This document shows, in pieces, positions 10,190 to 64,000 of a stretch of DNA of 64,000 nucleotides. The DNA comes from Phallusia mammillata (taxonomy: Eukaryota). The stretch covers positions 20,026,001 to 20,090,000 of the forward strand of contig OZ281497.1 in NCBI GenBank assembly GCA_965637545.1, given 5' to 3'. The notes beneath the pieces are model-generated. The model worked only from the letters and a program-made list of their open reading frames with translations. It searched no databases and was not told the origin of the DNA. The position numbers were made by a program, and so were the translations under genes. Positions within the stretch are counted from its first letter, which is position 1. Each line of letters begins with the position of its first letter.

Positions 10190-13100
10190 CGCGTTATCTC
10201 TGTGTCAAAGTTCAATTTTTCTTGCTTCGTTGGTGGTTTTGGTTAACTTCACTTTAATATCTAGTATATGGGGACAGCATTACATGACCCAAAGAAAAAC
10301 AAAGTCCTACAGCCGATAAAAACAAAAGTGATAACGGCAAAAATGAAACACGAGTTGATAATCATAAAATAAACATTTGTCGACTGGAAATATTTTCCAA
10401 CTTACTTTCTACTATACTTGTTTGTCTACGATTTTATGTTTAGTTGCAACGAGTCATCAGTTATAAATCCCTACGTAAAATCTGTTAACCTCGATTTAAG
10501 AGCTAACAGTAAAACACGCATGGCTGCCTCCTTAAGCACCAGCCAATATCTAGTTGCCACCGATTCGGAAATGGTTTCACACAAATTGAGAATCCGACAA
10601 AGCACCTATCGAGTCTTTTCTCGGAGGAAAACAATATAATTTTCCACCCGGACGCCTCGGTGCTATTGACGTTCGATTTCTTGGTGCGAACTGGTCATGT
10701 TATAGCGAGCACACCCGATGACACATCAAAGATGGCCGAATCATCAACCTCCGTTTTGTTTCCGTGCTACATGTGGGCGTGTTTTCGCAATATCCACGTA
10801 ATTGAGTTTCAACTTCCGACCTCCTTTTCATTCATGCCCACAAACAGAAACAGTGTGAGTTGCTGAAGCGTGAAGTTAAAGGTGGGTTGCTACATTTTTA
10901 AAAGGTGATAAATTTTAAAGGAGCTTGTTACACAATAATTTACTTAATACTTTGGCCTAAAGATTGAAGGAATTGTAAAATTCATTCCTTTTGAGCAATT
11001 ACTTGCGGAAGCTATAAAATTGAACTAAAACACGTTCTGTAGAACACAATACGCGACACAATACTGATGAGGAGCTTGTACTTTCGCAAGAATTATCATC
11101 GTGATTGGCATAACAGCGGTTTTGTACATCCGTTGCGGTGATACAAGAGCGACTTTAGCACATACTTGCCAGCCACAGTCAATCACACTTTACACTTTAC
11201 AGCATATTTGCGGTCGCATACCAGTTATACCCAACAGTGCGATTTTAAGCAAACGTCCTTGGATCGCAGGCGACCCGGTTGCAAGAGACTGTTGGTGTCA
11301 ACGAACCATTTAGGAGAATCTTAACACGCTAAAAGCCGGCGCCGACATGTTTATTGCGCATTATACGACCAGGCGAGGGGCGACGTCCTCTAAAGCAGCT
11401 GTCAGCAGCCGCAATTCACATCCTTTGGAATGCTAACCAACGTACCATCAAAGCGGACAAAGGCAGGCTTAGCAAACAGAGGTTGATTTTTTAGCAAGAA
11501 ATTTCATTTTAGTGCCTTGCTTACGGCCGACAGAGCCGAATGCTCGAAAGGTCTGTGTGTTGTGGCAGGTATGTCAACGTAGTCAATGGGGCTGTAACCC
11601 GTTTTGATCGGAAATTTATCGCCGTTTAAACACTCGGCGATAAACAAATGGAACAGTGCCGCGCTTGAAAAATGTCATGACCCCTTTTGAACACCATTCC
11701 AGAAATTCGTCTGAACACTTATTCGTCATCATAAGGGTGGATGTAATTTGCGAACCCGCGATTATACCAACGTTGTTGTTTCGTTAAATTTAAGTACACC
11801 AGTTTTAGGTTTTGGGTATGTGGTATATTAGGTAACTAACGATTCAAACAGAAATTCCAATTTACCGAATTGTGATTTAATTTTAACAAAAATAGGCTTT
11901 CGTAGTTTCTAAATTACGACCTTAGCGCTCCACCCAGACTAACAACAGTCGGAACACTGTTGGAATTTAACGCTATTAACACCTGTGCAAATCCCGACTT
12001 TTCGCCGCAGGAAACAGGCTAATTCTTCAGGTCTTAATGAGTTTACTGTGTCGACCGCATCTTGAACCTACTAGGTAACAGCTGGAATCCAAAGTAACCC
12101 ATGCGGAACGGCCTGACTCAGTGACCTACGCTTGGTGCCAAAAAGTTTCACACTGTTGAGTATGTTCATTAATTCCAGGTTATTTTAACATGAGTGAAAT
12201 ATGGAAATGTGTAGCGATGCGTGGCTATAAACACGATTTTAGCTTCACGCAACTGAGCTGAAAACCACATTCCCCCTGACAATGGTGTAACATTGAAGAG
12301 AGGTTACTATGTCTTTCGACACTGCACGAACGCGCAAGGCAGTACTGTACGATTATTACAGCAAAGCTTTTACACAAAACAACGGGAAAGACCTTTACTT
12401 AAGTGGGCCTTCGACTGAATAAAGTGTCTGCAAAGTCATTTTTTTTAATGTGCTAATTTTTTACGGAAACAAAGGTATATTTGTGACGTTTTTAACATAC
12501 ATTTTACAAGGTAAAATCCTGTAAAACGAAAATTACCAACCAAATGAACACATACATTTGCGACAGGCAAATCCAACCGAAAAAGTCATTTTGGGTGGCC
12601 AAATTCGGCCATCGGCAAACACGTACACCTGGTAGCATGAGGGGAGAGTTGCCGAACAACGTCACCAGATAGCTTCTTATTTGTGTTCGAAATCGGATTA
12701 CGTTACTCAGTGGTAAAGCCTAACCCCGCTACCATACACGACTTCTCTGGTTGCTGTTGCAATTACTGAAAACACTACTTTGGGCGATCAAAAGCTACTC
12801 TGAAACCAGGTTTCAAAGTTGAGGGCGCCGTCTGCGTTTGTTTGTCACAGCAGATATCAGGGGAGGGAATTAGCTGGCGAAAATGCATTTTTCAAAAAAT
12901 TTTAGACTCTTCAATTTGCCTGTGTTAGCCGCTATCAAAACAGTAAAAATGCACTTCACCATGTCATTTTAACTGTTTTATTTTTCGATTAAAAGTTCCT
13001 ATTAGACTTCTCACTGTATTAACAAATATTGCACTTTCAGCAGATTTTTATTGTAAAGAAATGACGCAACGTCGTCCCATCATCGTGATGTTGGCACATT

Positions 13101-15106
13101 GCACATGCAAAGTTCTCATAAAGAAACAAAAGCATTAATATTCAGTATAGTTGCTCCGTTTCGAAACGATACTACTTAAAGATTAAGCTAAAGAAAACAG
13201 CTCTATACACAAACCAAACAAGACTCTTAAAACATTGCAAGTTAACTACTAGTCGATAAAAACAATGAATGAACCATAGGCGTCATCAAGTCACAACAAA
13301 GTTAAAATACGGATTACGTCATGCCTTAGTTTTGGAGCTTAAGGTTACGGCTCTTTTGCGCTCAAGTTAATTAGGGGTGCAACTCGAGTCGGCAGTTGCT
13401 ACATGAGGAAGTAAAGGGCCTCGCGAACTATAAGCCACATCAAACGAAGCAGGAATCAATGCTAAGCCACCGACGAAGTTCGAGCTTGATTGGAAATCAA
13501 TTAAGCTCGGCTTGCCTGGATAAGAAAGTAAAGTGCCAACTGTATGCGCGATTATAGTTCCGGATTAAATTCCACAATTTTGACCGCTGTGGTATTTTCA
13601 TTGGCTTAAAACTGTGCTGTTTGATTGAGCGGGTTGACAGCCATGACTTAAAATCATTGGAAGTTTTATTGAGTGAATCTTTAACGCACCAGTGCGATTT
13701 GTACTTAATTTCTGAATCAACAGGTAACTCGGTTTAAATGCTATAAATCGGAAAAACAAAGTAATCTCAACATTTATTAAATGCGATAAGCTTCAGACAG
13801 GATAAATATTAAGTTCCAAAGCATCGTAACCAATCTACCAGGAAGAAAGCCTCTTCGCTAACCTCCTATGGGAGATAATACACTTAACTTCGAAACGCTA
13901 TCCAACGTCAGAAAGGCAGGTTAATGAATCCTCACAAAGGAACATACTTAAAGCCATCGCTTTTCACTCGGTAAAAGCGACTGTTTGTGCCCGTAGAAAG
14001 TCACCAATATGGGACATCGCGTAGGCTGCGGAATTTGGCGGAAAGCAAGAAATGAACAGTGAGTCGGGTTTACTTAACGGGGCAGTGTAGTGCCATACGA
14101 CTGTTGATTTTATACAACTGTTGGTTGAACGTCATGCTTGGTCGAAGCCAAATGGGGGCAAGGTTTTAGCGACATGAGGACCCAACTGAAAATTGGTTCA
14201 CATTTTAGGCATTCCTACTTTAGCCTGGGGGTACCTATCACTAGTTTGGAGGTTGAAATACCGGTGCACGGTTTTGTTGTTGATATTCGTGTATTCGCTA
14301 CATTACAAGTGACGACTTTTCAATTCGTCTACTACAGCCGAATATCGTGATTGATACAAATAGTTTCAACTGTAAATGGTTTGTAAGTTTTGGCAGGTTT
14401 AGGAAGGCCGACGTAACTATTGAAATTTCATATTACTCGGATCTCAACAGAACCATTTTAGGATTCTTCAAAAATTCGAGAGTCTTTGGCCTAAGATTTT
14501 ATTTGTAAATCGCTCGTTTGAGTTCAAATTCTGAAGAAATATTTGCAAGTTTGAAAGCATTTGTTGAGTTGCGCGGCGCCGTCTATTCTAAGCACATGAG
14601 ATTATAAACCCAAAAAATTTTAGGACTGTGCAAACAAGATAACTGTTATCTCCATACAAAACTCAATTCGGCTAATCCTTACAAGCAACGCTGGATTCGT
14701 TTTATCACAAACAAAAACAATCCCTCTAAAAGACAACAATCCAACATCAAACGGGTACAACGCAGTTGGATATCAAAGCACCAAGTTGTTGCCTACTACA
14801 CAACACGCCAAATACACACAAGTGCACTTGACGCTTCTGGCACTACTTACATACAGATTTATCTACAGTTCAATTCAAACCCAAAGATCACAAAAACAAC
14901 ATACGTCTATAATTCCGGCCCTAATAGCACATGTAGTAACACTGTAACCGCTTAAAACTGGAACAAAACATAACTTTATGATAAAGTAACCTCAGCTTAT
15001 GTACTCTACTAATGACAGGCGTCTACCCAACAGTGACCTCACATCTCTGGAGAAGTTTCATGCCTGCCTGTCTGTCAGATCGGCTCACCTCAATCAAATC
15101 TTCGAC

Positions 15107-43500: not shown

Positions 43501-46500
43501 ACTACTCCTGTGCAGGCTACTTACTCAATCTTCTATCCGTGGCAGTAATGATACGATCTTTTGTCAAGCACTAACATGTTGTGTTATTATGACAGAAAAG
43601 GCAACGAAAGCGATGGAAAAGCGGCAGCAATGGCGGCAGGGTTGTTACCTGGAAGAAAAACTGGTGTTGGAGCTATTAAAATTCCGTTACTGAATAAGAT
43701 GGAAAACAGTGAAAAGGAAAAGTTCATGGTGCAGCTTCCAGATGGATCAGTATCAGTATAGTAAGTGCCTTATTTTAGGTAGGTTAATTTAGGTAAACTT
43801 ATCCTTATTTTAATGTACATGCAGTTTCTTTAATCTGTTGTTGTATTTGGATGGGTGACCGCCTGGGAATACCGGGTGTCGTAGGCTTTTGCACATTTTA
43901 ATTCTGTAAACATTTTGTGATTGCTAACAATCCACATGCACAGACGCATCGTATCACATGGCTCTTTGGACAGTATAGCATAAAACAACTTAGTCCATGT
44001 CCTTTTACCTTTAAAAAAAACTGCGAGTCGAATTGCAGGATGTAACTTTTTGCAGTTTTATTGACACTCAAAAAATCAAAAAATAACCCCACATTTGAAA
44101 TGTGCATGGAAAATTAGTTAATTCTGCGAGATCATTGTTACGTCACAATAACAACCGTAATTACCCGCGAGCAATCGTCTACGACCATACCACGTTGAGA
44201 ACACCCCATCTCGTCCGATCTGGGAAGTTAAGCAACGTCGGGCCCGGTCAGTACTTGGATGGGTGACCGCCTGGGAATACCGGGTGTCGTAGGCTTTTGA
44301 TTTTTTCTTAGAACAAGTGGTTAGACACCAAATTTTCTACTTCAGTCATGTCAACGCAATAATTTTTTGTTGTCCACAAGTAAAACCGATATTTTTGCAG
44401 CTACCCGAAGAATGGGAACATAGCAGTAATGGCCAGTGCTGTGCCAAACTACCCAGGGCAGTTGTATGTCAACTGTTATGCAAACGACGATAAGCGGACC
44501 TGCTTAGCAGCATTTACACCATACGGAAAGGCAAGTAACACACATACATCACTGCTTCAGTCATGTCTCATTACGTTCTTATGTTGTGGCAAAGGAAAGC
44601 GTGTGTTCAACTGAGATGTTTTAAACAGTTTTTTCGCCCCTGCTTCCGCCGGTATCATTTTGCCAGACGGCCCCAAAATGAATGAAAATAATAATAACTA
44701 ATGTTGCTGCATTCAAAATTGCCGTTCATCGCGGCGATAATTTACAACCGTAGTTTTTTTTGTTCTGTATAATTAAGGGCATAGGTACACCTTTTTTCTA
44801 AATCCTTCACCAATGGATAAAAATTTCGAAACCAATTTGATAAAAGTTACAGTAGGTCCATAGTTGATTTGGTTGTTGCTGTAACCCAACATAGCACTAA
44901 CCCTTAGTCGATTTGCAGTCATGCTGTTACCACAAAGACGGCAGTCCTGGTCTAGTTCTCACCGATGAAGGAGGCTACTTGAAGTCAGAAGACGGGTCTG
45001 TGCTGAGAAAGTGGAATTGGCCAATGGCTGGGCTTAAACTTAAGGAAAACGTGGTTTTCCATCTGAACAAGGAAATGTATATCCGAGTGATGAACAAGAA
45101 CAACGTTACACTTAACTTTACTGCTAGCCGCGAGTCTGTGAAGATACCAGTGGGCGCTTTGCCCGGTCTGACCGCACCATCCCCAGCGACAGAGCAACAG
45201 GTATGCCTGGTCGAAATTTGTCACACGACATAAATATGTTTTCACTGTGATGAACCTATGCATTCGGACTTTGTTTTCCATTATTACGTTAAAAATTCTT
45301 TGCCAGTGCAAATTCGAGCACTAACCTGCCATCAGACAGTATCTAGGCCACAAAACGACATTTTCCAGTTTTGACTTGTGATATTTGATCGGCGTTACTC
45401 TGTCAAATCAGTCATTACGCATTTTGACGGACAAAATGATTTGGCTCAACGCAATTTTATATATTGTGTTCAATGCATGTGCAGCTACATTGCACTTTAC
45501 CTCTGCCAATTCGCGTCACATTGGAAAAAACGCGATGCAAAATTTATAGATCTATGTCAGGGCTCTTCAACCGGGGTTCCGCGGAACCCTAGGGTTCCGT
45601 ACTAACCTTACAGGGGTTCCGTGGTCTTTAAGGGTTGCTCAGGGGTTCGCAACGGTTTGTTGTACGAAAATGAATCATAACAATATCATTGTTGCGAAGA
45701 GCAATGCTCGCCTGTACAATCTAGTAGTTGGTTGCACCATTGATAAATTGTGACGTAATAAACATAGCCTTAATACACTCTGAAAAAATTGCGAGATAAA
45801 TGTAGAAACGACGGTTACAAGCAGTGTTTTTTTAAGGTGTTTTGGGGTGTTCAAATTTGTACAGGCGAGCTTTTAAGGTGTTCAAATTTCTCCAGCGGTT
45901 TCCCAAAATTTAGACGTGCAACTACAGTACTATTTTTTGGTATTTAATTGAAACACTTGCGGTCTCTTAAAACTACTTAGCGGTCACCCAAACCAAACCT
46001 TAAAAAAAACCTGGTTACAAGTAACACGGCAATGCGTTTCAGCGAATCGTTTAATTTAATTGAAGTAAACTTATATTTGAAGTTATAATTTAAATAAACT
46101 TAACTTATATATATTTTAATTGAAGTAAACTTATATTTTGTGCTTGGGGTGTGTTATGTAAAAATGCATGTTTTTCTTTGGTGTAGCCTATTACATTGGT
46201 TGAAACTATTTTATGGGGTTTCGCAAAGTTTGACAAGACAACTTGAGGGTTCCATGCCACTAAAAAGGTTAAAGAGATCTGATCTATGTATTTTTGTTGA
46301 CTTATATATTATACATTTATTAAGCCACGTTAGCAATGTTCGTTGCATGCAGACCGGGCTGCGTTCCGGCCTTCGTTTTTCGTCCAAGATCGCCAGCGAG
46401 TACCATGGTCTCCGTTCTGCTAAAGAAGATAAAAGCAGAGCAAGCAAACTCCGAAAATACGGACTTCGAAGATCGGTGAATACCCATTCCGTTCCATGTA

Positions 46501-49500
46501 CTTTATCCTATACAACAAAACACAACTGCATTCCATTTTTTAGATGCCATCACGGAAGACAGCTGAAGTGGAAGAATTGAAGCGTTCTTTGGAACCAGCC
46601 AACCGTTTTGAGTTCGAATCCCAGGCCGACCGGGATTTGCATCGACTTCAGGACAAGACCAAACATCTGGTTGATGAATGGATGGAACATTACAGGATAG
46701 CTGTTGGAATAAGCTCTCCCGCTCTGAAAAAGATGTTTGAAAAACCAGTGGTAATTTTATATTTTGTCAATAAATGTTTTTTTGTGTGTGTGCCCCGCTG
46801 GACTGCATAGACCAGGGGCGTGCAACTGTTTATCGCAGTGGGCCACAACTTACAGTTAAAATATTGCTGAGTGCCAGACAATAAAGCAACACATACATTT
46901 TTTAAACAATTTATTTAATAGCCCTTAGAGTACTTTTGATCAATGGGATATCTGCTAACCTTATCGTAGAATAAATCTCAATATATTTACTGCACCTATA
47001 AATCACGTACTGAATCAATTGCTAGAAAGGCAGTTCTTTCATAATGCACACTATGATGCAACAAAGGGAATATTTCGTCACAGTGGATAAAACTTTATCA
47101 CTATGTGAGGTTGTACAAAGTCAAAAATACCAGTGATGGTGTACAAATAGCAACATTCCATGCTCTATCAGTAAAAAGTATTGATAAGAAATAGAGTACT
47201 TTGAAGTCTGTGCGGGCCACAAAAATAGATGCCGCGGGCCGGACACTGGCCCGCGGGCCGTATGTTGCACGCCCCTGGCATAGACGCTTCAGGGATGATC
47301 CCAGTTATGACTTTATGTTCATCTTCTCTGACTACTGGTCAATCTGACGATCCTCCACTGCAAAGCTGAAATGTGTAACATACGAGGCTGGTAACCGCCC
47401 TCATTAGCTAACTTTTGACGTGTTCGCAGATGTGCCTGGGTAGCTCATTTGGTAGAGGACGAGTGTCAGACAGCCTCGTGTTGTGGGTTCGAATCCCACC
47501 GCATGCTATAGATTTTTCTATCTGTGCCTTGCCACATGGAAATGTTTGGTGGCCGGCCGATTCGATATTATGCCTTCAATGGACTTAGCGTACCATGATT
47601 TAAATGTTTTGTAGATATTCTGAATTTCTGTGTTGTTTGCAGCATAAGACGACACAACGTAAGATTCAAAGTGCGAGGACACGAAAACCTGCGGACGATG
47701 ACGATGAGTTAGTGGGCCAAGAAACAAAGTTTCAATCGTTCAGGTCGCCATCAGCCCCGCCGAAACACATGATGCCTGGTCCACATGTAAGTACACTTTT
47801 ACGATCATCAACCTCTGACTGAAAAATGTGCTGTTTTGAGATTAGAAATCGTGGCTCTCAGTAATACACTGGATAATAAAACAGACATTTTGTTACCCCG
47901 ACATTTCGACAAAAACGATTTGGTTAATAAAATGTACAATAAAATGTTTATGTTTTCTCCTGGTTAACATAATAAAAGTAATCTTTCTTCAAAAAAACAA
48001 CTTTTATAACAGACAACAAAAGTAACCATAAAATCGAAAACGTCAATTTCGACCAAGTAGATTAGTACAAATGGAACTTTACAAATATTTGTACACAAAA
48101 AGGCCTTTACGGTTCACTTGTTTTTGTAGTCGGTCATGATCAGGGATGAGCGACTTAAGAAGCATCCTTCAGCTATTGCTGGATCAACGTCCAAGAAGGG
48201 ACTCGACACCCATGTACGAATCGATGAAACACCATTAGACGTCAAATCATCAGGTATTATGAAGACGAAAATAATAAACTCTATCAGTGACAATTTAATT
48301 AAAACTTTGACTTGGTGTTTTAATTTATATTGTATATCGTATTTTGAGCACAACGTTAACAAAAAATTATAAAGGGCAAAAGTAAATAAATGACTGTTGC
48401 CTTTAATGCATTACTTCTTTTAATGCAGTGGTTCCCAAACTTTTTCATTATTTTGTCAAAACGGTTACTTTGTCATTATTTCGAGGGCTCGCGGTCCTTA
48501 AGCTGGAATGTGCATTTCAGGAAAACGAAAGTTGATTGCAGGATTTTCGCTAGTTATGCAAAATTGCGCATAATAATGATCTAAACTCTATAAAAGACAG
48601 CTTGTGACATTACAGACAAGACAAAAAAGCAGTACGATTGTGCGCGAACAATTGCATTTTTGATAGTTGTCTTTCAATAAAGGCTATTGTTTAGCAATGG
48701 AGACAGTCGATTTCTCAATTCTCTTGATTTAAACTTATTCAGTAGCACAAACTGACGCTAAATAAGATTATAGAATTACTTTACCCGCTTCGCGGTCCCC
48801 CCAAAATTGCCTCACGGACCCCTAAAGGACCGCGGACCCCAGTTTGGGAACCGCTGTTTTAATGTGATTAACGATGGCTTAAGCTGGCCAAGTATTTATG
48901 AAATAACAGTCTTTTCGCGTTTTGTTGCATTTGTGTTTAAGTAGTTTTTTTTTACTAAATCTAAACAGTTGCACATTAAATACATTTAAGCGTATTTTTA
49001 TATTTTCTTATGTTTTAATAGAATGTTAAAGTGAAACTCTTTGTTTAGTCTTGTCTACAATGCTTTACGCTTTTAACTGAGTCAAAACGTTTCTTGTAGC
49101 AAAGGAACCGATTTCGCATCGGACGCCTTCTACACCTGGATCCCGGCAACGACCTCATACTCTTGGTTCTCGTTCGTTCCAGCGCCCCCAGCGGTCGTCG
49201 TTGCGCACTAGTTCGAGCGCAGGAAGCAGTCCAACAAAATCGCCTGAAAAATCGTGGACGCCTGCGCCCGAATGCTGTCCTGTGGTGACTAGAAACAAAT
49301 TGCTCCACGATGGTATGTGCCGAAAATGTTTGTTGAATGTAGATCTAGATCTAGAGCCTTTGTAATGTAGTCCGTGATTTCCGCCATGAAAAGCTTACGT
49401 CTTTTGACATTATATATAGCATTGCAGGTGTTTCGCCTTATTACTATGTTGCCTTCAATGGCCTAAGCTTCAACAATGCCAAACCTCCGAAATAGATCAT

Positions 49501-52500
49501 CAAATGCACGAATTCAGTCCATGTACGCTGGCTGAAAACAATCATTGTAGTATATGTGTGTTAAATTTCCACATATTTCCACTTCAAGTTAAGCCTTATT
49601 TATGTGAACTTAATTTAATTACGTGACACTTTTCATACTGTGCCATTTGGAATGCCCTAGCCGCTAGGGCCTAGCGGACTGATCAAATCAGACAGCTTTT
49701 ATAATTGATACGTTTGTTTGCTTGAGCTTCAAACTTTTTGCTTGTACAGCCACCAAGCACCCGGACAAAACGTTTACGTGCAAGTGTAGCAAGCATCGCA
49801 TTCCGCTCATCAACGACCTCGAGCTCGACTACTTTCTCCGCATGGTGGCACCAGTGGCCCAGCTGATCGTGATCTGTGTGGTGAACAGCCTTTACCCAGA
49901 AGCCAGTCCGTACGATACCATGTTCGACAAACTTTACATCGATAGAAACAAGTTAGTGATTATTTTTTAGTGATTATTTTTTTACCCGCCTGTGGTGATT
50001 TAGGATGTATAGAAAAGTTTACAACTGCATTGAGGTATGGCGCCCACAATTAGCGCACCAAAGCAAAGTATTTTGCCAGACATTACTGTCATATTAGTTT
50101 GTTTTAAATTGCGTTTTTGATGTAAACTAAATTGTAACGAATGGATTTCAACAAAGACGAAACTACAACATCGGATTATGCAATGGGCCGATTAAATTTT
50201 TTTGTCAGTCGGTTCTATCACAAAAGTCATATTTTTCAGCCGGTTCTGTTACAAAAGTTATATTTCCATTGACAGTAACCAGTAATGCTAACCGGTTCGC
50301 TGATCTCATAAAATTTCGTGAGACGTTTCTATAGAACCGGTGCGAACCGGCTGAATCCCACCACTGGGTGTATGTACAGAACGATTTTGAACATGTTGCA
50401 AAAATATAATGGAGGACTTTCAAAAGAATGTGTGTGTGTAAAATCAACAAGAAGGGTTTTATTTATAGCGTAGCTCTTAGTAATAGTGTGATCTCTTCAT
50501 TTCTTTGTTTGAAAACTGTTTGAAATTTCTGGACTTTAATTTTATCTTGTTGCACAGAAACCGATCGAACCCGTGTTCTCAATCCAGGCACGATCAATAC
50601 CGCATCCTCCGCTACGATCTTTCTGTAGCGAAACTGGAATCGAAGCGTCCAACACCCCTGCTGCTAGGACGCCATAACGTCGTGCCTGGAATGACCTTGG
50701 TCAGTGACCTTTAATTTTAGGACTGATTTTATTCAATACAGGATCAAGATTTTGTTTAATATATAATCCACAACGGACACTTTTTCAGCAGTATTTATAC
50801 CTACTATTAAGTCAGGGTTCTTAACCAGGGGTGCACCCCCAAGAGGTACGAGAACTGTTCGTAGGGGGTGCGGGGATGCTGAATCATTAAGGTTGGTTAG
50901 GTCTATTTATTTAAGCAATTACAGAAGAGGGCGCGAAAATTGGTTGGTGATTTGAAAGCGGTGCAGCAAGGAAAAAGGTTAAAAACCACTGTATTAAGTG
51001 GTTCTGATTTGTAAGTCATGAAAAATCTATGACAGCCCCATATTGATAACATACAAAATTTATTACTGTTTTTTTTTAGTAGGCTTAAAGTGCACTTTTT
51101 TAGGATTGATAACTAACTTACAAGCATCGAGCCAATAAATAAGAAGCTGCAGATAAACTGGAGTGCCGTTGGATCGCTACACTAGCCAATACGACCGGTC
51201 TCTCTTCACAAGCTGCACTAATGAGACCATATAGGACGAAATAGTGTGCACTGTCTGCAGATAACTAATTTGTTTTCAAACACTTTACTGTGTACGGCTT
51301 CTGCAACTGACTTAACAGTTTAAAACCTGACAGTAAAACAATCCGTGTGCTTTTTGCAGATGTATTGCGGAGGTCGACTTTTGTTCGCCGATCACATTTT
51401 CAACGGTTACGGCAACGCAAGGAACGATTTCCGCAAGCAAGTATTCAGATCCAAACAGGAGTTTATGCTCGGGCATTTTCTACCCGATGATTTCAGGTAA
51501 AATACAAAAAAGCACATAATCAAAGTCATGATGGCCCTAACACTTATGTCTATTGTATTCGACAATGGACAAACTTCGATCGACTGTTCGATGTCATATT
51601 TATCATATTTTGTTATATTTAGTCGTTTGTTACAACGGAAACTTTAAATTAGGCTCTAGAACAGTGATTCCCAACCTGGGAGGAATACCTCCCAAGGGAG
51701 ACATATTAAAACTTTAGGGTGAAATTTCCTTTCTTCTGTAAATGTGGTTTGTAAATAGACACTTCAGCTCTGTAAATATAACCTGCGAAGTTGACAAACA
51801 ACCCAATTTTAAATAATCTTTGTATGGTTTAGCATCCACTATGTAGACCGAAAATATATTACAACAACAAAATTGTGTTCCCAGATTTACCCCTGGAACA
51901 GGAAAACCTGGTTTCCGTGCAGCCTGGGGCGGGGAAATTGGGGGAACTGGCGTTGGAGGTAAAGGAGCCCCTGGAATGTATTTTAGCGGTTCCAAGTCCA
52001 AATCGGCCGGGTTTAACCCCCCAGCAGCGCCACCCATCGATGAGACTCGATCTGAAGGTGACGTCACTTCGGACACTACTATCGACATAAAAATGCCCTC
52101 TTCAAAGTAAGTTTGGTATTTTTGTTCTTTTTAGCTTTTGTAAAGGTCCAGTAAACTTTCAAACAGATTTTTAGAGCTTTTTAAGTCAGCTGATTTGGTT
52201 TTAAGTTGAGAAAACGTGGCCCCAAGGAATGCCCTGACTGACATAGTGCAACCCGTCTTTTACAACCATCGAAACAAACAACCTTCGTTTTTTTTTAAAT
52301 CACAGTAGGCCAGGCCCATTAAAGGCGTTATACCGAATCAGCCGGTCACCAAGCATTCACTATACGACGAGGCTAGAAAATTCCGGTCCATTCGGTGTGA
52401 CGCCTTTAATGGGCCCGGGGTACTGTGATTTATATATGAGTGTGTCGTGATTGCTGGTCTGACGGTCATATAAACGCTTTAGGGCTGATCACAGTTGTGA

Positions 52501-52866
52501 ATTTGTGTTTTTTACGTTAGTTCAAATTTTCGCAACCAAATTACATATTTTTGTTAACCTTTTGTCGAATTGAGTCAATTATTCACAACCAAATATCAAA
52601 CAAATCTATTTTTCAGGAGTTTTGACACGGCGCGAGAATTTGTCCAGTACACTCTATCAACGCGTATGTACGTTGTACCAGCACACCATCAACGTAGCAG
52701 GACACGATTGAACGACAGATCGCGCACTGCCGCTACCTCGCGGTATCCACAACTAAATGCAACTTACCCGCCAACCAGCGCCACTCCTCACTCTGTGGTG
52801 AACCAAGACGGCTCCTTGCGAGTCGGTCAGCTTAACAGTTTTGTAAGAATGCAGGCTGTTAAGTGA
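40523..52866 (+). CDS. C3orf20: C3orf20-like protein (FAM194/ERICH6-family domain)
   Basis: 18 phase-consistent exons: 40523-40638, 40721-41580, 42319-42567, 42696-42761, 43066-43231, 43338-43439, 43596-43760, 44401-44530, 44919-45200, 46544-46750, 47643-47786, 48130-48253, 49100-49312, 49750-49951, 50558-50699, 51360-51496, 51885-52106, 52617-52866. FAM194-like YYPKNGNIAV...AAFTPYG..CCYHKDG...GGYL...G...RKWNWP. C3orf20-like N-terminus (APNILRELADIL...LPPGVTNLLTQTWDEVVSE) and C-terminus (CKCSKHRIPLINDLE, LLGRHNVVPGM.LMY.GGRLLFADHIFNGY, LPDDFRF). Orthology is from recall, not from a search. Confidence 0.82.
43843..43890 (+). pseudogene. 5'-truncated 5S rRNA copy (3' 48 nt including terminator)
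   Basis: gtatttggatgggtgaccgcctgggaataccgggtgtcgtaggctttt matches 44251-44298 at 47/48 positions; 408 bp offset. Confidence 0.9.
44177..44295 (+). rRNA. 5S rRNA: 5S rRNA gene, full length, in C3orf20 intron 7
   Basis: 119 nt, GTCTACGACCATACCACGTTGAGAAC...GTGTCGTAGGCT. Helix I ends pair; box A (AGTTAAGCAACGTC) and box C (TGGATGGGTGACC) are intact. Confidence 0.97.
44295..44306 (+). terminator. RNA Pol III T-run terminator of the 5S gene
   Basis: TTTT then gaTTTTTT directly after the 5S 3' end. Confidence 0.8.
45558..46281. mobile_element. hAT (Buster-type) non-autonomous element in a C3orf20 intron
   Basis: TIR cagggctcttcaac / gttaaagagatctg (11/14); perfect TSD ATCTATGT; subterminal GGGGTTCC repeats. 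Confidence 0.85.
46813..47277. mobile_element. hAT (Buster-type) MITE in a C3orf20 intron
   Basis: Perfect 14-bp TIR caggggcgtgcaac / gttgcacgcccctg; perfect TSD GCATAGAC; subterminal GCGGGCC repeats. Confidence 0.93.
47434..47507 (+). pseudogene. tRNA-like Pol III unit (tRNA pseudogene or tRNA-derived SINE head)
   Basis: A box TAGCTCATTTGGTAG; perfect T arm GTGGG-TTCGAAT-CCCAC; anticodon stem ACGAG/CTCGT closing an abnormal 11-nt loop; acceptor stem only 5/7 paired; TTTTT at 47513-47517. Confidence 0.65.
48426..48856. mobile_element. hAT (Buster-type) MITE in a C3orf20 intron
   Basis: TIR cagtggttcccaaac / gtttgggaaccgctg (14/15); perfect TSD TTTTAATG. Confidence 0.92.
50813..50991. mobile_element. 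hAT (Buster-type) MITE in a C3orf20 intron
   Basis: Imperfect TIR cagggttcttaacc / ggttaaaaaccactg; perfect TSD TATTAAGT. Confidence 0.85.
51662..51840. mobile_element. Truncated copy of the 22295 hAT MITE family
   Basis: cagtgattcccaacctgggaggaat...tgtggtttgtaaatagacacttcagctct...aagttgac aligns with 22295 onward; the right TIR is missing. The left flank CTCTAGAA also has a central TA. Confidence 0.75.
52296..52432. repeat. Long imperfect palindrome (MITE-like hairpin) in the last C3orf20 intron
   Basis: taaatcacagtaggccaggcccattaaaggcgttataccgaat pairs with attcggtgtgacgcctttaatgggcccggggtactgtgattta: ~43-bp arms with few mismatches. Confidence 0.75.
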
Positions 52867-53525
52867 ATAAATACACAATTTGTATTTGGCGTCAAGTATA
52901 TGTTGCACACACATTTGCTTACAGTAACACAATCCGACAGTAGACTAATTTTACGAGTTGCGTCTAAGACGGTAGCTTTAAATTGCTTTTGCAACAAATG
53001 TGTTTGCTTTTCCGGGTATTTTTTATACTTGTTACCACTTAGCACGATCTACACACAATATAGGAGTAAACACAAACATTTTTCTCTACAGTGATTAACT
53101 TGCAATTCATAGAGTAGTCAATGTTTTATTTCTAATTCTTATAGATATCGGATACTTGTTACAGACTTGCGCCTGTAGCCACTGTTTTTGTTTTTGTTGC
53201 TTTACCGTTTCGTTAAAGATTGTTATATTTTGGTTGTAGCAAAATAATTGTGCAGTGACCTGGCTGTTGTAATGATGTGGAAATGGAGGAGTCAGCCAAG
53301 AACTTAGACTCACCAAGAGAAGGTTTGCGAATATCACATACACCCACACACATATTAAACCTTGACATCTAAACTACACTCAAAAACATCAGCCAAATTG
53401 CTTTGAAATTTTGCTTTTAATTTTGTGACTCCATTGTTGCAATGTCATGCTTAGTCAGCAAATAATACCACATCGCTACCACACATGCAGTTCATTACTA
53501 ATTCAATAATATCGCCTCGCTGACA

Positions 53526-54646
53526 TTATTCGTTCTTTGATATAATCTCGTTTAAATCTGGCCAGACGTCGTCCAGCCTTCGCACGTGATTACGCAGTCG
53601 GTCTCCATGGCAACTTGTTACCCTTTCCATTGGACCTCTGTCTCCGTAGTGACCTCCAGTACGCATTCCCGTATGTGCCAATAACAGCGCGTTGGAATAT
53701 TGAACGGCATCAGAAACACTCGGTGCTTCATTCTTCGGCACAAATTTTGGAACAAACTGAGGACGAAGCACTTCGTGTTGTTCCCGGGGTATTTCCCTAA
53801 CATACGTCGGGCGTATCACTTCGGCGTTAGGTGGCGGTGTGGAGCTTATCGGTTGCGTTGCTTCCTCGGTCGGTTTAGGGTCTCGTTTTCTTCGTATCTT
53901 TCTGGCCGGTTCCGTGTTTCCTATGGCCGCAGCTGCGTCAATGGCGTCAATAATGTTGAGATCATCGTCGTTACTGCACCAGAAACGGCGCCGTTCTTCC
54001 CAGCTCCGTTTTCCGTCCAAACACTCACGTAAAAATGTGATGTACCGACAAGCTAACTGAAATGAAACAAGGAGTTTTAATGTGAGATCATTGCGACATG
54101 GGGCAACAATTGCTGCATAAATACATCTATGACATGTATTCCGTATGGCAACGTACTGAAAATTATACTATCTTAAAAAATGAAATTATCAATTTTATCC
54201 TAGGCTACTCTTTATCAGGATTTTGCCCTTACAGAACTACAAAGCTTATTATTGTTCTGCATGATTTATATTAAAACCCTCAGGAATGCCGGAATTGCAC
54301 TTTGGTCGTATTTTTTTAATGATGTAGCCTACTATACACCGATAGTAAAATGACTTTTTTGTTGGTATTGTGCAGAGCGCAGTTTATTGTTTTTAAGATG
54401 CTGCGAAAACGATAAAAGATTAAATTATTTACAACATCTTGCACATACCTGTAAGGTTTGCTTTTTGTGTAGTTTTCTTCCAACTGGCAATCGGATAGGT
54501 ATCACTCTCTGCAAAGATTCTAAAGATTCATTGAACATTCGCAGTCTTTCTCGTTCCCTCACAGCTGCCAAAGGTTTGCGCTGGGTGACCTTACCTGCTG
54601 GTTTGGTTAATTCTACACCGTCTACCTTCCTACGTTTAGAAGCCAT
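53526..54646 (-). CDS. Divergent group-A bHLH transcription factor, paralog A (242 aa)
   Basis: Exons 54646-54449 and 54056-53526 (CAG|gtatgt...tttcag|, phase 0). bHLH: QRKPLAAVRERERLRMFNESLESLQRVIPIRLPVGRKLHKKQTLQ|LACRYITFLRECL. N-terminal KRRK. Family not assignable by eye. Confidence 0.88.
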
Positions 54647-56947
54647 AAGTATAACAAAGTACTTTTCAAAGTTGTAATTAGGCTTTAGCTTGTCAAATGT
54701 GGTTAATACATTGGCCAATGACACTGCATAAGTTACAGTGTAGAGTTGGTAAAATGCAACGAAAAAGGGGTAATACGAACCTCACGAACCGCAATCGGGA
54801 AAGGCGATTTAGGCCACGCTTGTGTGGATGTTCAATTTCCGCAAAGCACGGGAACGTTTTTGGTAAAAATCCCCATAGCAGGCGACTGTGTGATTATAGC
54901 TTGGGTTCATTCACAAGTCGATGTTTTTCAAATGTCGTTAAAATGGGAAATGTGTATTGTTTCCCGTTTTTGTTAAAGTGGACCTTTTTTATCTATAGAT
55001 AGGCCTATTTTGTTTTCATGGTATGTAAAGTCACATACAAACAGGTTGAGTAAATTGGCAACTGACACGACTTAGATTAGACTACGAACCTTACATGCTG
55101 AAACTGTTTTATCTAGTTTCCCAGGAAGCAGTTTATGACATCACACACAAAACTAAAAACACTAGAATTTTGCAGACAATCACATTTCATGTCGCTAAAA
55201 ATATACATGTATGGCTCGGTAATAAAGACTCTTCTTTACATATACAGTATTTACACTTCTTTTTATTCCCTCTTGATTCAAATTGATTGAAGACTCACGT
55301 GTTTTGGACGTTAATGCAACTTTGGTACGAAATAATATTTGCTTCAAAAAGTGGTATTACAACAACATCAGGTGAAGCATATTAAAACTTTCTGTTTGCA
55401 TCGTTTTTTTGTTACGCTATTTTATAAAAGTTCATCAAATTATCTAAATCAAAAGCCAAAGTGAATGGTGCGCAGCTGATACGCAAACAAATTGATCCTT
55501 GGCACAACATGCAGAGTTGGACGTCAAGTGACAAAAACAAATACGCGGCCCGTAGAGGTTTATTAGCGGCCTATGTGATCGGCAAAGCACCTCTTGCAGT
55601 GACCGTACATCCGAAAACAAACAGCCTTCCTATCGTGGAGGTATGCGGTTGGTCAAACATCGCATAGCGAAGCGACTTCTGCTACAGGCCCATTACTTTT
55701 CTTCAAATGTGGACTCAAATTGTGACGGGCAGCGTTTATAAAAACTTGTATTATTAGCGTGAGATTTTCCCTCATAGGGCGTTTATAGGGCATTCCCACA
55801 AACAAATCATACACTTATAACTTACGATGTTGTACATAACTTTAATCCTTTTCCGCAGGTCCCAGTGGCCCAATTGTTTTGGAACAACTTCCTATTGTGC
55901 TCCACGATAGCGATGAAACTTATGCTACATTCACTCAATTGCTTAAAGCTCAAAAAATTATTGTGTAGTGTGTACAATATTGGTCATAGGCATTATACTA
56001 ATAGTTATCTATTAGTTATCTATTGTTTGTAGTTATACAAATCAAAGTACTTTAGGACCACCAACCGTATGTTCATATGCGAAGCATTCCAATTTAAATC
56101 ATAACACTAATATACCGCGTTTTGGATTTAGCACCGGGGATAAACTATTTTTGCCGGAAACACTACGTTGCACAAACCGCATGGTTAGCATTTTCTTCAC
56201 ACATTTACCTGCGACTTGTGACGGAAAGTTCTTTGAAGTGCAACATTTTATCGTCGATCGTAGAATCCCGTCTCGCTTGGAGATCACTTCTTATCATAGC
56301 TGATGTTATAACTTCCCGCTGTGTTCACCAGCACTAACAGGATTGTCGAAAATTTTATATCGATGTTTTGGTAATAAGTTTCACTCGAGAGTCAATTTGT
56401 TTTAATACTTGCTATGAATAAACTTATTATTGCAATTTTTGAAGAACATACCTTTATCCTAACTACCCCTCAAAAACACGATAGTTAAACAATTACAGTC
56501 CGTTAAATGTTCAAAATACAAAACACTTTTACAGAAACGTTTTTATTACTCATTAAATAATATTTCGTCATTTGAAGTTTTGTCAATTGAACATCGCACA
56601 AAACAATATATTTCAATCCTGTCACATTTCCGATTTGGGCCAAAAAATATGTTTGTCAAAGCTTACTCAAACATAGATTATCCGTTGGCCGGTCTTGATG
56701 TGGCGCCTGCGGTCTTGCAAATCCATTGAACTTGAATCGACGCGACCGAATCGGAAACTGAACAGCGAGCTCTGCGCACATATCCGACTTAAAGTTCATT
56801 GTCACTCTGCCTGAGCCAGTGATCGCTGTTGGGCGCAGAGCAGGGACCGACGGTCTGGGGCTTTCGGGTGTTGACGCTGCGTATAGTCGAACCCTGGGCG
56901 GATGCCACTGACCACGAAAAAGGAGCTCACTATGATACAGACCAACG

Positions 56948-56955
56948 TATAAATA
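56948..56955 (+). promoter_or_regulatory. TATA box of bHLH paralog B
   Basis: TATAAATA ~85 bp upstream of ATG 57040, just downstream of a CpG-rich stretch (56690-56930). Confidence 0.55.
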
Positions 56956-57039
56956 CTGTTCCACCTAAACTCTTCTCATTACAATTTTGTCATCTATCTA
57001 TTAATAGCTGTGAGTGTATTTCTGAAATCAAGCTCAAAA

Positions 57040-58098
57040 ATGAATTGCGCATACGAACAAGGCACCATCGATCAGGTAAAAACTTATTCCAATGGATATA
57101 TTATATTTACTATTTCTATAGTAAAAATAAAAAAAATAGGATTCATATCACTGTTTGTACAAAACCTTAATATTACGTTTTTGATTCAGGGTATAACCTA
57201 TATGCGATCAACCGCCCAGAAGCGAAAGAGTGACGTCGATTCTACGTCAAGCATAAGCAAAAAGAGACGCCCAAACGCCGCCGGTAGAGAGCGCCAAAGG
57301 TTGCGGGTGTTCAACGAGGCTTTGGAAGATTTGCAAAGTGTAATTCCGATCAGGCTTACACAGAACAGAAAACTCCACAAAAAGCAAACCCTTCAGGTAA
57401 CCTATTGAAAAAAATTATAGTCAGCTAAATGGTACTACAATAACAATTCCATAATATTGTTGCAACATATTATTGCAAAAAAAACTAATAGCAACTCTTG
57501 TTTGCAGCTGGCAATTCGCTACATCAACTTTTTGCACGGTTGCATGAATGGCGAGAGGCAGTGGGAAGAAAGAAATCGTTTCTGGTGCAAATCAGAAGAC
57601 GAATTGATGATGGACGCCATTGACGCCGCTGGTGAACCCTCACCAATCGGTCACTTGCCAGTGACCACCACAAGTCATCAGCAATTGCCAATGGAGAACG
57701 GATATAATTGTCAGCCTGTTGACGACAGTTGGAACACACTTCCCACCTATAACATGTCACCGGAACCACCAATGCAATACCATGCCCAATCGATGACGCA
57801 GTACCAAGAGGGTTATCAGCAGTACACGGCACCACAATTTCCCCAGACTTTCGAAGAAGTGCAGCACCAGGACTTAATCTGCACAAAAACCGATGAATTT
57901 CCGGTTTACAACTCAGAACCGTTTTTCGCTGAACAAGGTCCCAATTACTTTGTACCTATCAACGAAAACACATGTATGCCAGATTACTCCACTGTCGCAC
58001 AAGATGATGTGTTTCATTTTATTTCGTCTGCGGAAAGCGTTTTAAACCCAGACAGCCCAGAAAGTGGATTCGTTTCAACGGCATCCTACGATTTGTGA
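57040..58098 (+). CDS. Divergent group-A bHLH transcription factor, paralog B (~277 aa; alternative start 57202)
   Basis: Exons 57040-57075, 57190-57396, 57508-58098, all phase 0 GT-AG. bHLH: KRRPNAAGRERQRLRVFNEALEDLQSVIPIRLTQNRKLHKKQTLQ|LAIRYINFLHGCM. Same helix-2 intron position as paralog A. Y/P/Q/acidic-rich C-terminus. Confidence 0.88.
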
Positions 58099-58149
58099 TT
58101 ATAAAGTCTTCACTTCATTTTGGTCTGCAAAGTGTGTGTGTATTTATGC

Positions 58150-58155
58150 AATAAA
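58150..58155 (+). terminator. Polyadenylation signal of bHLH paralog B
   Basis: AATAAA 52 nt after the stop codon. Confidence 0.55.
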
Positions 58156-59076
58156 AGGCAAAATATCAATCAATGAACAGTATAGTATAAAAGTGACGGG
58201 CGTTTTAAATTTTGTCTCAGAACGCGAGTTTAGTAGGTAGTTTTTTTGCAGAAACTACAAGCATTGCACGGTTGGATGCATTTGTTTGAAGCAGTGTGAA
58301 TAGAAAAACGTGCGAGTTGGCATTGACAAACGAAGCGACTGACGCCGTGACGCGTATGCGTGCAACACAGGCACAAACGGCGGCAACACAAACGCATTCG
58401 CAAGGTACGCAACAGAAAACATGCCGACGTTGGCAAGATTGTTTACCTTTGACAAATTTACTGTTTATGTAGACTATGTAGGGGCGGCATTGTTTTATGC
58501 AGCCTGATAATTTATAATGAGGACATTAAATTGATGGCGATGTTCCTTTGTATTGTTCCATTATGGTCGACGTGTAACGTTTTGTTTTGTTGGCTGTGGC
58601 CTTGTTACGTTGTTACACACATCTAAAGGGATTTAGATAGCCTTTTTAATTCGTGAACAATGAAAGTAGTGTACTGTACTAAAACTTTTATGCTCTTTGA
58701 TGAGAAATTATAGGAAATAACAATATGTGAAAGTCCTTGTAAAAGAGAGTTATTTCGTTTTCTACGTTGCTAGAAAAAGTTGGCTGATCATCCAGATTAA
58801 TCATTATTTATGGCCAAGATAACATGATTGTTACTGTTGGTGTTTTATTGTGTGTTTTCAATCTTTGGGATGATTTGTAGTGTGTTCATAATTAGAAATT
58901 AAAACTGAACGTGACAAAAATCTCTTTAAAAAGGTCTATAAATGAAATAAATATTGCTTTTTTTGCACACTTGTTAGTACAAATTGTATATATGTCAGTA
59001 CATTTTGTTTACAGAGTACAAACAAAAAGAAAGCAGAGTTCGAACAATGTCAATTTAAGAAGATTTATTTGTATAA

Positions 59077-60379
<1,303 letters not shown>

Positions 60380-63131: not shown

Positions 63132-64000
63132 ATGGTGCTGGATCTTGATTTATTCCGCACTGATAAAGGTGGCAACCCGGAAAAAATGCGAGAAAACCAG
63201 GCAAAACGTTACAAAGATGTTAAGTTGGTTGACAATCTAGTTGCTGCAGACAGTGAATGGAGAAAATGTAAGTTTATTTGTGATATTGTTTACAAAAAAA
63301 GTTTTTAAATTAATTGACCAGTTTGTTTCAGGTCGTTTTACTTTGGACAATCTAAACAAGCTGAAGAACTTATGCAGCAAATGCATTGGTTTGAAAATGA
63401 AAAGCAAAGAGGATGTTGGAACTGATGAAACATTGCCAAGTGACCTTCCTACCCTTGAAAATCTCACTTCTGACATTTTATCAGTATGTCATCACTTGTT
63501 TGTTTGCTTCTATTATATATTTTATTCTTAATGGGTGGGTAATGTTGAAATGTGCTATGCTTACAAAGCATCTGCCATAGAGCTGCCAGCCTAAATGCAA
63601 GAGAGACACAAGTGGTCAAGATGGGGTTAGAACCATCAACCTTGTGAGCATGTGGCAATCACTAACCACTTTTCTTTCTTGATTTTTTTAATGTGACGTT
63701 ATAGCATGGATGTCTTGTCAAATTATCCAGCATTTGTATATATTTTATGTGTATATTTTATGGCAGGGTCTTACAGTGGTCCAAATCAAGAAGATTCGTC
63801 TCACTGTTGATGCAGAAATCACAAAATGTGACTCAAGGAGGCTGGAACTTGAAACAATTAGACACACCAATTTGAGGGAAATAGGAAACATTTTGCATGA
63901 CTCTGTCCCTGTCAGTAATGATGAGGTTTGAAGAATATTTGTGTACTTTTTTGTTTGCTTTATTTATCTGGGATTTAAATTTTTGTGCAGGATGCTGACA
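63132..64000 (+). CDS. SARS1: Cytosolic seryl-tRNA synthetase, 5' part (runs off the window)
   Basis: Exons 63132-63267, 63332-63483, 63767-63925, 63991->end. Motifs: [68 protein letters not shown]. Confidence 0.96.
63610..63670 (-). mobile_element. Possible tRNA-derived SINE fragment in SerRS intron 2
   Basis: Minus strand AGTGGTTAG (A-box-like) followed ~27 nt later by GGTTCTAACCC (B-box-like); no full cloverleaf. Confidence 0.3.

Follow-up and report, generated by a model that had tools for sequence, protein, structure and literature searches.

According to a review (PMC7693978), Ciona possesses exactly three genes of the Twist-like kind, Twist-r.b, Twist-r.a and Twist-r.c (= Twist-like-2), which correspond to the consecutive models KY.Chr5.355-357, are adjacent to each other on chromosome 5 and are expressed both in mesenchyme and in trunk lateral cells. 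Ciona Twist-like1 is a marker and a specifier of the mesenchyme lineages A7.6, B7.7 and B8.5, and raises the transcription of Twist-like2 before being itself down-regulated, with Twist-like2 being tied to cell migration (PMC5703972). Likewise, Twist-r.c is a mesenchyme marker under regulation by Twist-r.a/b (PMC6147236), and Twist-r.a/b are key mesenchyme fate factors downstream of fibroblast growth factor (FGF) (bioRxiv 10.1101/2022.05.16.492211, citing Imai et al. 2003). Here we analyse a stretch of 64,000 nucleotides from Phallusia mammillata (GenBank assembly GCA_965637545.1, contig OZ281497.1, positions 20,026,001 to 20,090,000 of the forward strand; 'the window') that contains a head-to-head pair of basic helix-loop-helix (bHLH) genes, hereafter A and B. 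With high confidence, we identify this locus as the Twist-like cluster of Phallusia mammillata, B being Twist-like1 and A the ortholog of Twist-like2/Kotato.

The two gene models and their parts are as follows (positions are those of the window, and the slash in TLQ/LA marks the intron).

53526-54646, minus strand: gene A, assigned below as the Twist-like2 / Twist-r.c ortholog; 2 exons, 242 amino acids, from spliced open frames

54449-54646, minus strand: first coding exon of gene A, with an N-terminal basic stretch, the basic region, helix 1 and the loop (Pfam HLH, 23.2 bits)

54057-54448, minus strand: intron of gene A, 392 nucleotides, GT..AG, phase 0, at TLQ/LA of the HLH (spliced contigs, three studies)

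53526-54056, minus strand: last coding exon of gene A with the stop codon, comprising helix 2, the post-HLH RxRFWC motif, a Pro/Arg-rich tail and a C-terminal DVWPDLNEIISK motif

54729-56977, no strand: spacer between the two genes, bounded by the outermost observed transcript ends, 2.25 kb (RNA contigs and sequence)

57040-58098, plus strand: gene B, assigned below as Twist-like1; 3 exons, 277 amino acids, from spliced open frames

57040-57075, plus strand: coding exon 1 of gene B, 12 amino acids; its 5' untranslated region starts at ~56978-56991 (RNA contigs)

57190-57396, plus strand: exon 2 of gene B, with the basic region, helix 1 and the loop, ending at TLQ (Pfam HLH, 28.7 bits)

57508-58098, plus strand: exon 3 of gene B with the stop codon, comprising helix 2, the RxRFWC motif, an acidic Tyr/Gln/Pro-rich tail and a C-terminal SPESG motif

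The first bHLH exons of both genes exceed the Pfam HLH gathering score of 20.7 bits, and the models are borne out by RNA contigs from public runs placed on positions 53200-58400, which show presence and not absence. The intron joint 54056/54449 of gene A is found in spliced contigs from three runs (X1, X3, X15) of three studies, and the joints 57075/57190 and 57396/57508 of gene B in spliced contigs from three to four runs. All predicted introns of A and B are thus matched exactly by RNA joints, and hence both genes are expressed and correctly spliced; silence of one copy, which would have spoken against the pair as first proposed, is not what the contigs reveal. The transcript of gene A covers at least 53200-54728, its 5' untranslated region reaching out to at least 54728 and its 3' untranslated region to at least 53200 (contigs 53200-54056 joined to 54449), and that of gene B covers ~56978-58193, the 3' untranslated region ending at ~58193. 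The two ATGs lie 2394 bp apart, in agreement with the 2.4 kb given for the divergent pair in the preliminary description, and no RNA contigs were found in the spacer across four runs. Both promoters are presumably located within 54729-56977, where a TATA-like TATAAATA occurs at 56948-56955, 30 nucleotides upstream of the first gene B contig start. CAGCTG E-boxes were considered as a locus-specific signal and rejected: they are in excess throughout the window and not particular to the A/B locus, the spacer containing a single copy at 55473.

The products of A and B align with an E value of 1e-22 over the exon encoding the basic region, helix 1 and the loop, and of 9e-18 over helix 2 and the ~30 residues following it. 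Recomputation returned the previously given count of 41 identical residues among 58 in the bHLH. The tails had been described as unrelated, basic/Pro-rich in A and Tyr/Pro/Gln-rich and acidic in B. This is accurate for composition, with net charges of +3 for the Pro/Arg-rich tail of A and -19 for the Pro/Gln/Ser/Tyr-rich tail of B, but it does not hold for the entire length: ~30 residues past helix 2 are kept in both proteins (R103, R105, F106 and W107 of B being near-invariant in a 23-row alignment), and MAFFT aligns a short C-terminal motif between the subtypes (FADLEEILSS vs VWPDLNEIISK). In the AlphaFold monomer model of B, helices 42-63 and 76-95 form a standard bHLH with a predicted local distance difference test (pLDDT) score above 90, and short helices 100-103 and 110-123 extend over the post-HLH motif (pLDDT 64-74), with a weak C-terminal helix in addition. 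The post-HLH extension may alter dimer choice or stability.

Gene B is 100% identical over 277 amino acids to a deposited Phallusia mammillata protein, 'Twist-like1a' (A0A6F9DWH4), which was the sole protein retrieved with the last exon. Its relatives include 'twist-like1b' of Ciona as well as C. savignyi and Clavelina paralogs, and the tree places B within the Twist-like1 clade of Ciona, C. savignyi and Clavelina (support 95/96). Judged by sequence, gene B is Twist-like1, of the Twist-r.a/b type.

For gene A, the best Ciona match in tblastn is a 277-residue HLH gene, at 77% in the bHLH and with E 1e-22 for the whole tail (residues 59-242). Both proteins end in DVWPDL..IISK and have LACRYI and RRRFWC in common. 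In blastp, A aligns end-to-end with C. savignyi Kotato (E 1e-48) and with Ciona Twist-like2 (Q4H2N6; E 1e-47). Among 1.84 billion representatives, a profile search found the Ciona ortholog P0010 (cluster member P0156 = Q4H2N6 / NP_001071844, 'transcription factor protein') as well as the C. savignyi ortholog of A, deposited as 'orphan basic helix-loop-helix factor Kotato', and in the tree A is grouped at 98/97 with Clavelina P0012, Ciona P0010 and Kotato P0011 in a Twist-like2/Kotato clade. The terminal, third HLH gene of the Ciona locus (L001) is Twist-like2, because the Twist-like genes of Ciona are only three and consecutive. At the level of sequence, gene A is orthologous to Ciona Twist-like2 (Twist-r.c) and C. 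savignyi Kotato. The preliminary description had presented both genes as unassigned; B is instead the deposited Twist-like1a and A a member of the Twist-like2/Kotato clade, so that both fall inside a known family that is already described as a cluster (98/97 and 95/96 support; PMC7693978, PMC5703972, PMC6147236).

Several points weigh against this identification of the locus. The Ciona gene (277/262 amino acids) is 'Twist-like2' by elimination, two of the three being named Twist-like1, together with gene order, and the name 'Twist-like2' stands on no database record, the public names being 'transcription factor protein' and, for the C. savignyi gene, 'Kotato'. The gene A protein had no match in a word-index search of a 5.8-billion-protein database with the 176 residues of exon 2, which we take for a gap in the database that does not speak against the gene. 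For Phallusia, the tissue, the timing and the regulation of A by B are transferred from Ciona. Finally, comparison of the intergenic DNA of Phallusia and Ciona yielded no significant alignment block (best E 0.09), and hence no claim of a conserved shared enhancer is made. A literature search on 'Kotato' gave no relevant paper, and none was found describing the Phallusia genes.

A search with the profile of the family to which A and B belong gave 33 matches at E<=1e-10, of which the named ones are all ascidian and the unnamed ones carry the family signature, followed by a plateau of generic group-A bHLHs at ~50 bits. The signature in the loop and helix 2, RKLHKKQTLQLA.RYI.FL, is present in A, B and all Ciona, Clavelina and Styela members, and a post-HLH extension, W..R.RFW(C) followed by an (I/M)DAIDAA helix, occurs in both A and B (consensus W..R.RFWC...IDAIDAA). 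The common phase-0 intron at TLQ/LA, reported before and now verified by RNA in A and B, is located at the same place in the Ciona genes and in Styela P0013, and many database fragments that consist of exon 1 only read TLQ and then V into the intron, which implies the same intron. Exon counts likewise match those of the Ciona orthologs, with two exons for the A type and three for the B type. The within-family tree, calculated from 112 columns of the bHLH and post-HLH parts, left the Styela sequences and three Logan-assembly sequences without resolved placement. Since the A and B subtype clades each span Phallusia, Ciona and Clavelina, the A/B duplication predates the split of these genera. The proposal of an old inverted paralog pair is upheld, A and B falling into separate supported subtype clades, with the same layout in Ciona.

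Gene order leads to the same locus. A multi-exon FAM194-domain gene at 44393-52866 (plus strand) has exons that are collinear, one by one, with those of the Ciona FAM194 gene flanking Twist-like2, and in tblastx the succession of the FAM194 exons, A (minus) and B (plus) is collinear with the Ciona chromosome-5 locus L001, which comprises FAM194 (plus), the 277-residue HLH gene (minus), twist-like1b (plus), a second Twist-like1 copy (minus), a galactosyltransferase and an FN3 protein. In Clavelina (locus L002) the layout is Twist-like1 (minus), a transporter gene, Twist-like1 (plus), a Twist-like2-type gene (plus) and FAM194 (minus), and in Styela (loci L005/L006) two family members in tandem (plus, plus) are followed by FAM194 (minus). 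Linkage of the Twist-like cluster to FAM194 is ancestral to ascidians. Among Phallusia, Ciona, Clavelina and Styela, the head-to-head orientation is found only in Ciona and Phallusia, and the family does not require it, because Clavelina and Styela keep the genes in tandem. The layout had been regarded as apparently independent, which the identical order FAM194, Twist-like2 (minus), Twist-like1 (plus) in Ciona and the literature on that cluster contradict. The notion of a lineage-specific module without a clean classical family survives in part: the family is ascidian-wide and in the free tree lies outside the canonical Twist clade, but the module has already been described.

As to individual Twist-like1 copies, Ciona Twist-like1a/1b (L001, 10001-11069 on the plus and 12398-13422 on the minus strand) are a recently duplicated inverted pair, near-identical in the N-terminal and bHLH parts and divergent at the C-termini. 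In C. savignyi, two of four Twist-like1 paralogs (P0008, P0009) have GKEHN.L instead of GKER.RL in the basic region; the conserved Arg following the basic-region Glu is lost, and these may be DNA-binding-impaired copies or gene-model artefacts. Downstream of gene B, open reading frame pieces with multiple hydrophobic segments at 59098-60229 (plus strand) gave one weak match to Triose-phosphate Transporter / EamA (E 6.6e-5, below the Pfam cutoff) and probably represent an SLC35-like transporter gene. A separate RNA contig of run X12 starts from 58337. Further downstream, a short open reading frame at 63710-63931 (plus strand) resembles the N-terminus of seryl-tRNA synthetase, with no Pfam hit, and in Clavelina (L003) such a synthetase gene is located close to the Twist-like cluster; this proximity may extend the synteny from Phallusia to Clavelina.

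A and B are group-A bHLH transcription factors with an E-box-type basic region, a pair which a duplication produced ahead of the split between Phallusia, Ciona and Clavelina and which has been located beside FAM194 ever since. If the findings for Ciona are transferred, FGF signalling would turn on Twist-like1 in mesenchyme precursors, the acidic, aromatic-rich tail of Twist-like1 would serve to switch on mesenchyme genes, the neighbouring Twist-like2 included, and Twist-like2 would assume a later role in mesenchyme differentiation and migration. In the most likely reading, B acts early, as the determinant, and A, next to it, is a target that follows later; for Phallusia we infer tissue, timing, the cascade from B to A and the dimer partner. 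The A/B pair is an ordinary, already described ascidian locus of larval mesenchyme specification. What is new are the verified Phallusia gene models, the identification of A as a Twist-like2/Kotato ortholog missing from the protein collection searched, the linkage to FAM194 throughout ascidians, in which gene orientation varies, and, as a weak hint, a relative in amphioxus. The value of the analysis lies mainly in annotation and housekeeping.

Of broader concern is the relation of the family to canonical Twist: true Twist orthology bears on comparisons of ascidian mesenchyme with vertebrate neural crest and mesenchyme, and the data hint at a separate lineage. It is conceivable, at somewhat short of even chances, that the Twist-like genes of ascidians are rapidly evolving co-orthologs of canonical Twist which duplicated within ascidians after the tunicate/vertebrate split. 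Consistent with this, (i) the closest solved structure by sequence is TWIST1 (8osb_B, E 1.2e-6), followed by TAL1 and NeuroD1, (ii) the approximately unbiased (AU) test does not reject the family and Twist as one clade (p 0.129, 56 columns), and (iii) no other Twist gene is reported in Ciona, where the genes have a Twist-parallel mesenchymal role (PMC7693978). However, in the bHLH, A and B are no more identical to verified Twist (26-27/54, three representatives) than to PTF1A (24-26/55) or an amphioxus orphan (25-26/56), and neither A nor B exhibits the highly conserved Twist bHLH sequence. A C-terminal WR motif, the Twist box, is a mark of canonical Twist, and a rough test for a motif of the [FSY].[VI]WR type found it absent from A and B. 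Moreover, the free tree, which comprises 63 rows and 56 columns, has long branches, leaves many bHLH families unsampled and uses outgroups picked by similarity to the family profile, contains a 97/95 split with the ascidian family, amphioxus P0068 and a trio of cnidarian-type proteins on one side, and the verified Twist clade (99/89) along with PTF1A, atonal-like and other bHLHs on the other. The family intron inside the HLH and the deposition of Kotato as an 'orphan' bHLH argue in the same direction. A look-alike search of the ESM Atlas gave nothing beyond generic group-A bHLH clusters (Sage-like, HAND2, TCF23-like, NeuroD), with scores below the threshold.

It is tempting to speculate that the ascidian 'Twist-like' genes are instead the expanded remnant of an older, separate group-A bHLH lineage, to which amphioxus P0068 and possibly the cnidarian-type proteins P0070/P0080/P0092 would belong, with canonical Twist lost, the mesenchyme programme running on a different bHLH and the FAM194-side pair being the ancestral ascidian unit. 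We regard this scenario as rather unlikely. P0068 still groups with the ascidian family (Shimodaira-Hasegawa-like approximate likelihood ratio test, SH-aLRT, 97) once the cnidarian-type trio is removed, and its best blastp matches within the fetched set are ascidian family members; its branch in the tree is long. Of the trio, only P0092 has a known source, a jellyfish. P0068 may be the closest outside relative of the ascidian family; its intron is at another position and therefore lends no support to orthology. The public, automatically assigned name of P0068 (L004, 6001-7584), 'mediator of DNA damage checkpoint protein 1-like', looks like a mis-annotation. On the comparisons made here, the name 'Twist-like' is not a demonstration of orthology, and 'orphan', as used for Kotato, is equally fair.

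With the identification of the locus as the Twist-like cluster, the proposal made in the preliminary description that A and B are an unassigned, independently evolved bHLH pair, forming an obligate heterodimer or an activator/modulator pair under one shared bidirectional enhancer, becomes improbable. The head-to-head layout is indeed kept in Ciona, with 2.25-2.4 kb between the Phallusia genes, the dimerisation surfaces are near-identical and the tails oppositely charged, and the runs with ~0.32 of sampled words (three such runs were placed) carry contigs of both genes. The pair is, however, already named and assigned, and the genes of Clavelina and Styela are in tandem rather than head-to-head. 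Expression in Ciona is sequential, with Twist-like1 first and Twist-like2 downstream (PMC5703972), and the relation known there is a regulatory cascade and not a described heterodimer. The intergenic DNA of Phallusia and Ciona likewise has no conserved noncoding block, as stated above. In addition, run X12 has a contig of gene B and none of gene A (three further runs from its study have ~0.16-0.20 of sampled words), a pattern that is compatible with non-identical expression of A and B and constitutes weak evidence, as contigs prove presence only, never absence. That gene A is a copy of Twist-like1 in decay or without expression, and for this reason missing from protein databases, as the lack of a match to exon 2 could be taken to suggest, can be practically dismissed in view of its intact open frame and canonical splice sites, its spliced transcripts in three studies and its orthologs in Ciona intestinalis, C. 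savignyi and Clavelina, where the N- and C-terminal motifs are conserved.

The Twist-like pair may finally be set beside other bHLH systems. Mesp1/Mesp2 and Myf5/Myf6 are linked bHLH paralogs acting in one mesodermal lineage, one of them upstream or earlier; they belong to unrelated bHLH families, and their likeness to A/B is one of layout only. The Branchiostoma belcheri orphan P0068 (KAI8503343.1 / XP_019622992.1) has the basic region and helix 1, RPNAA.KERERL.VFNQAF..LQ, in common with the ascidian family, but lacks the post-HLH RxRFWC motif, has a longer loop and contains an intron in helix 1 instead of at TLQ/LA. Canonical Twist (TWIST1/2, Drosophila twist) likewise is a group-A bHLH with an E-box-type basic region (RER.R) and has a mesenchymal/mesodermal role, as described for the Ciona genes. 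In contrast to Twist, the ascidian family has a loop that is one residue longer and contains R(L/P)..RKLHKKQ, shows only ~50% bHLH identity, and adds the post-HLH RxRFWC motif and the intra-HLH intron.

The closest systems are Ciona Twist-like1a/1b with Twist-like2, and C. savignyi Twist-like1 with Kotato. Differences concern the copy number of Twist-like1 (one in the Phallusia window, the inverted pair 1a/1b in Ciona and several in C. savignyi), the spacer (~2.4 kb in Phallusia vs ~1.8 kb in Ciona, with no alignable noncoding DNA) and the tails, which outside the motifs are only ~30% identical between Phallusia and Ciona. The Ciona and C. savignyi genes nonetheless represent the same family with the same two subtypes and exon-intron structures as the Phallusia pair, and share with it the post-HLH motif and the subtype-specific C-terminal motifs. 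In the Ciona cluster, moreover, FAM194 is the neighbour and Twist-like2 stands head-to-head with the adjacent Twist-like1, exactly as in Phallusia.

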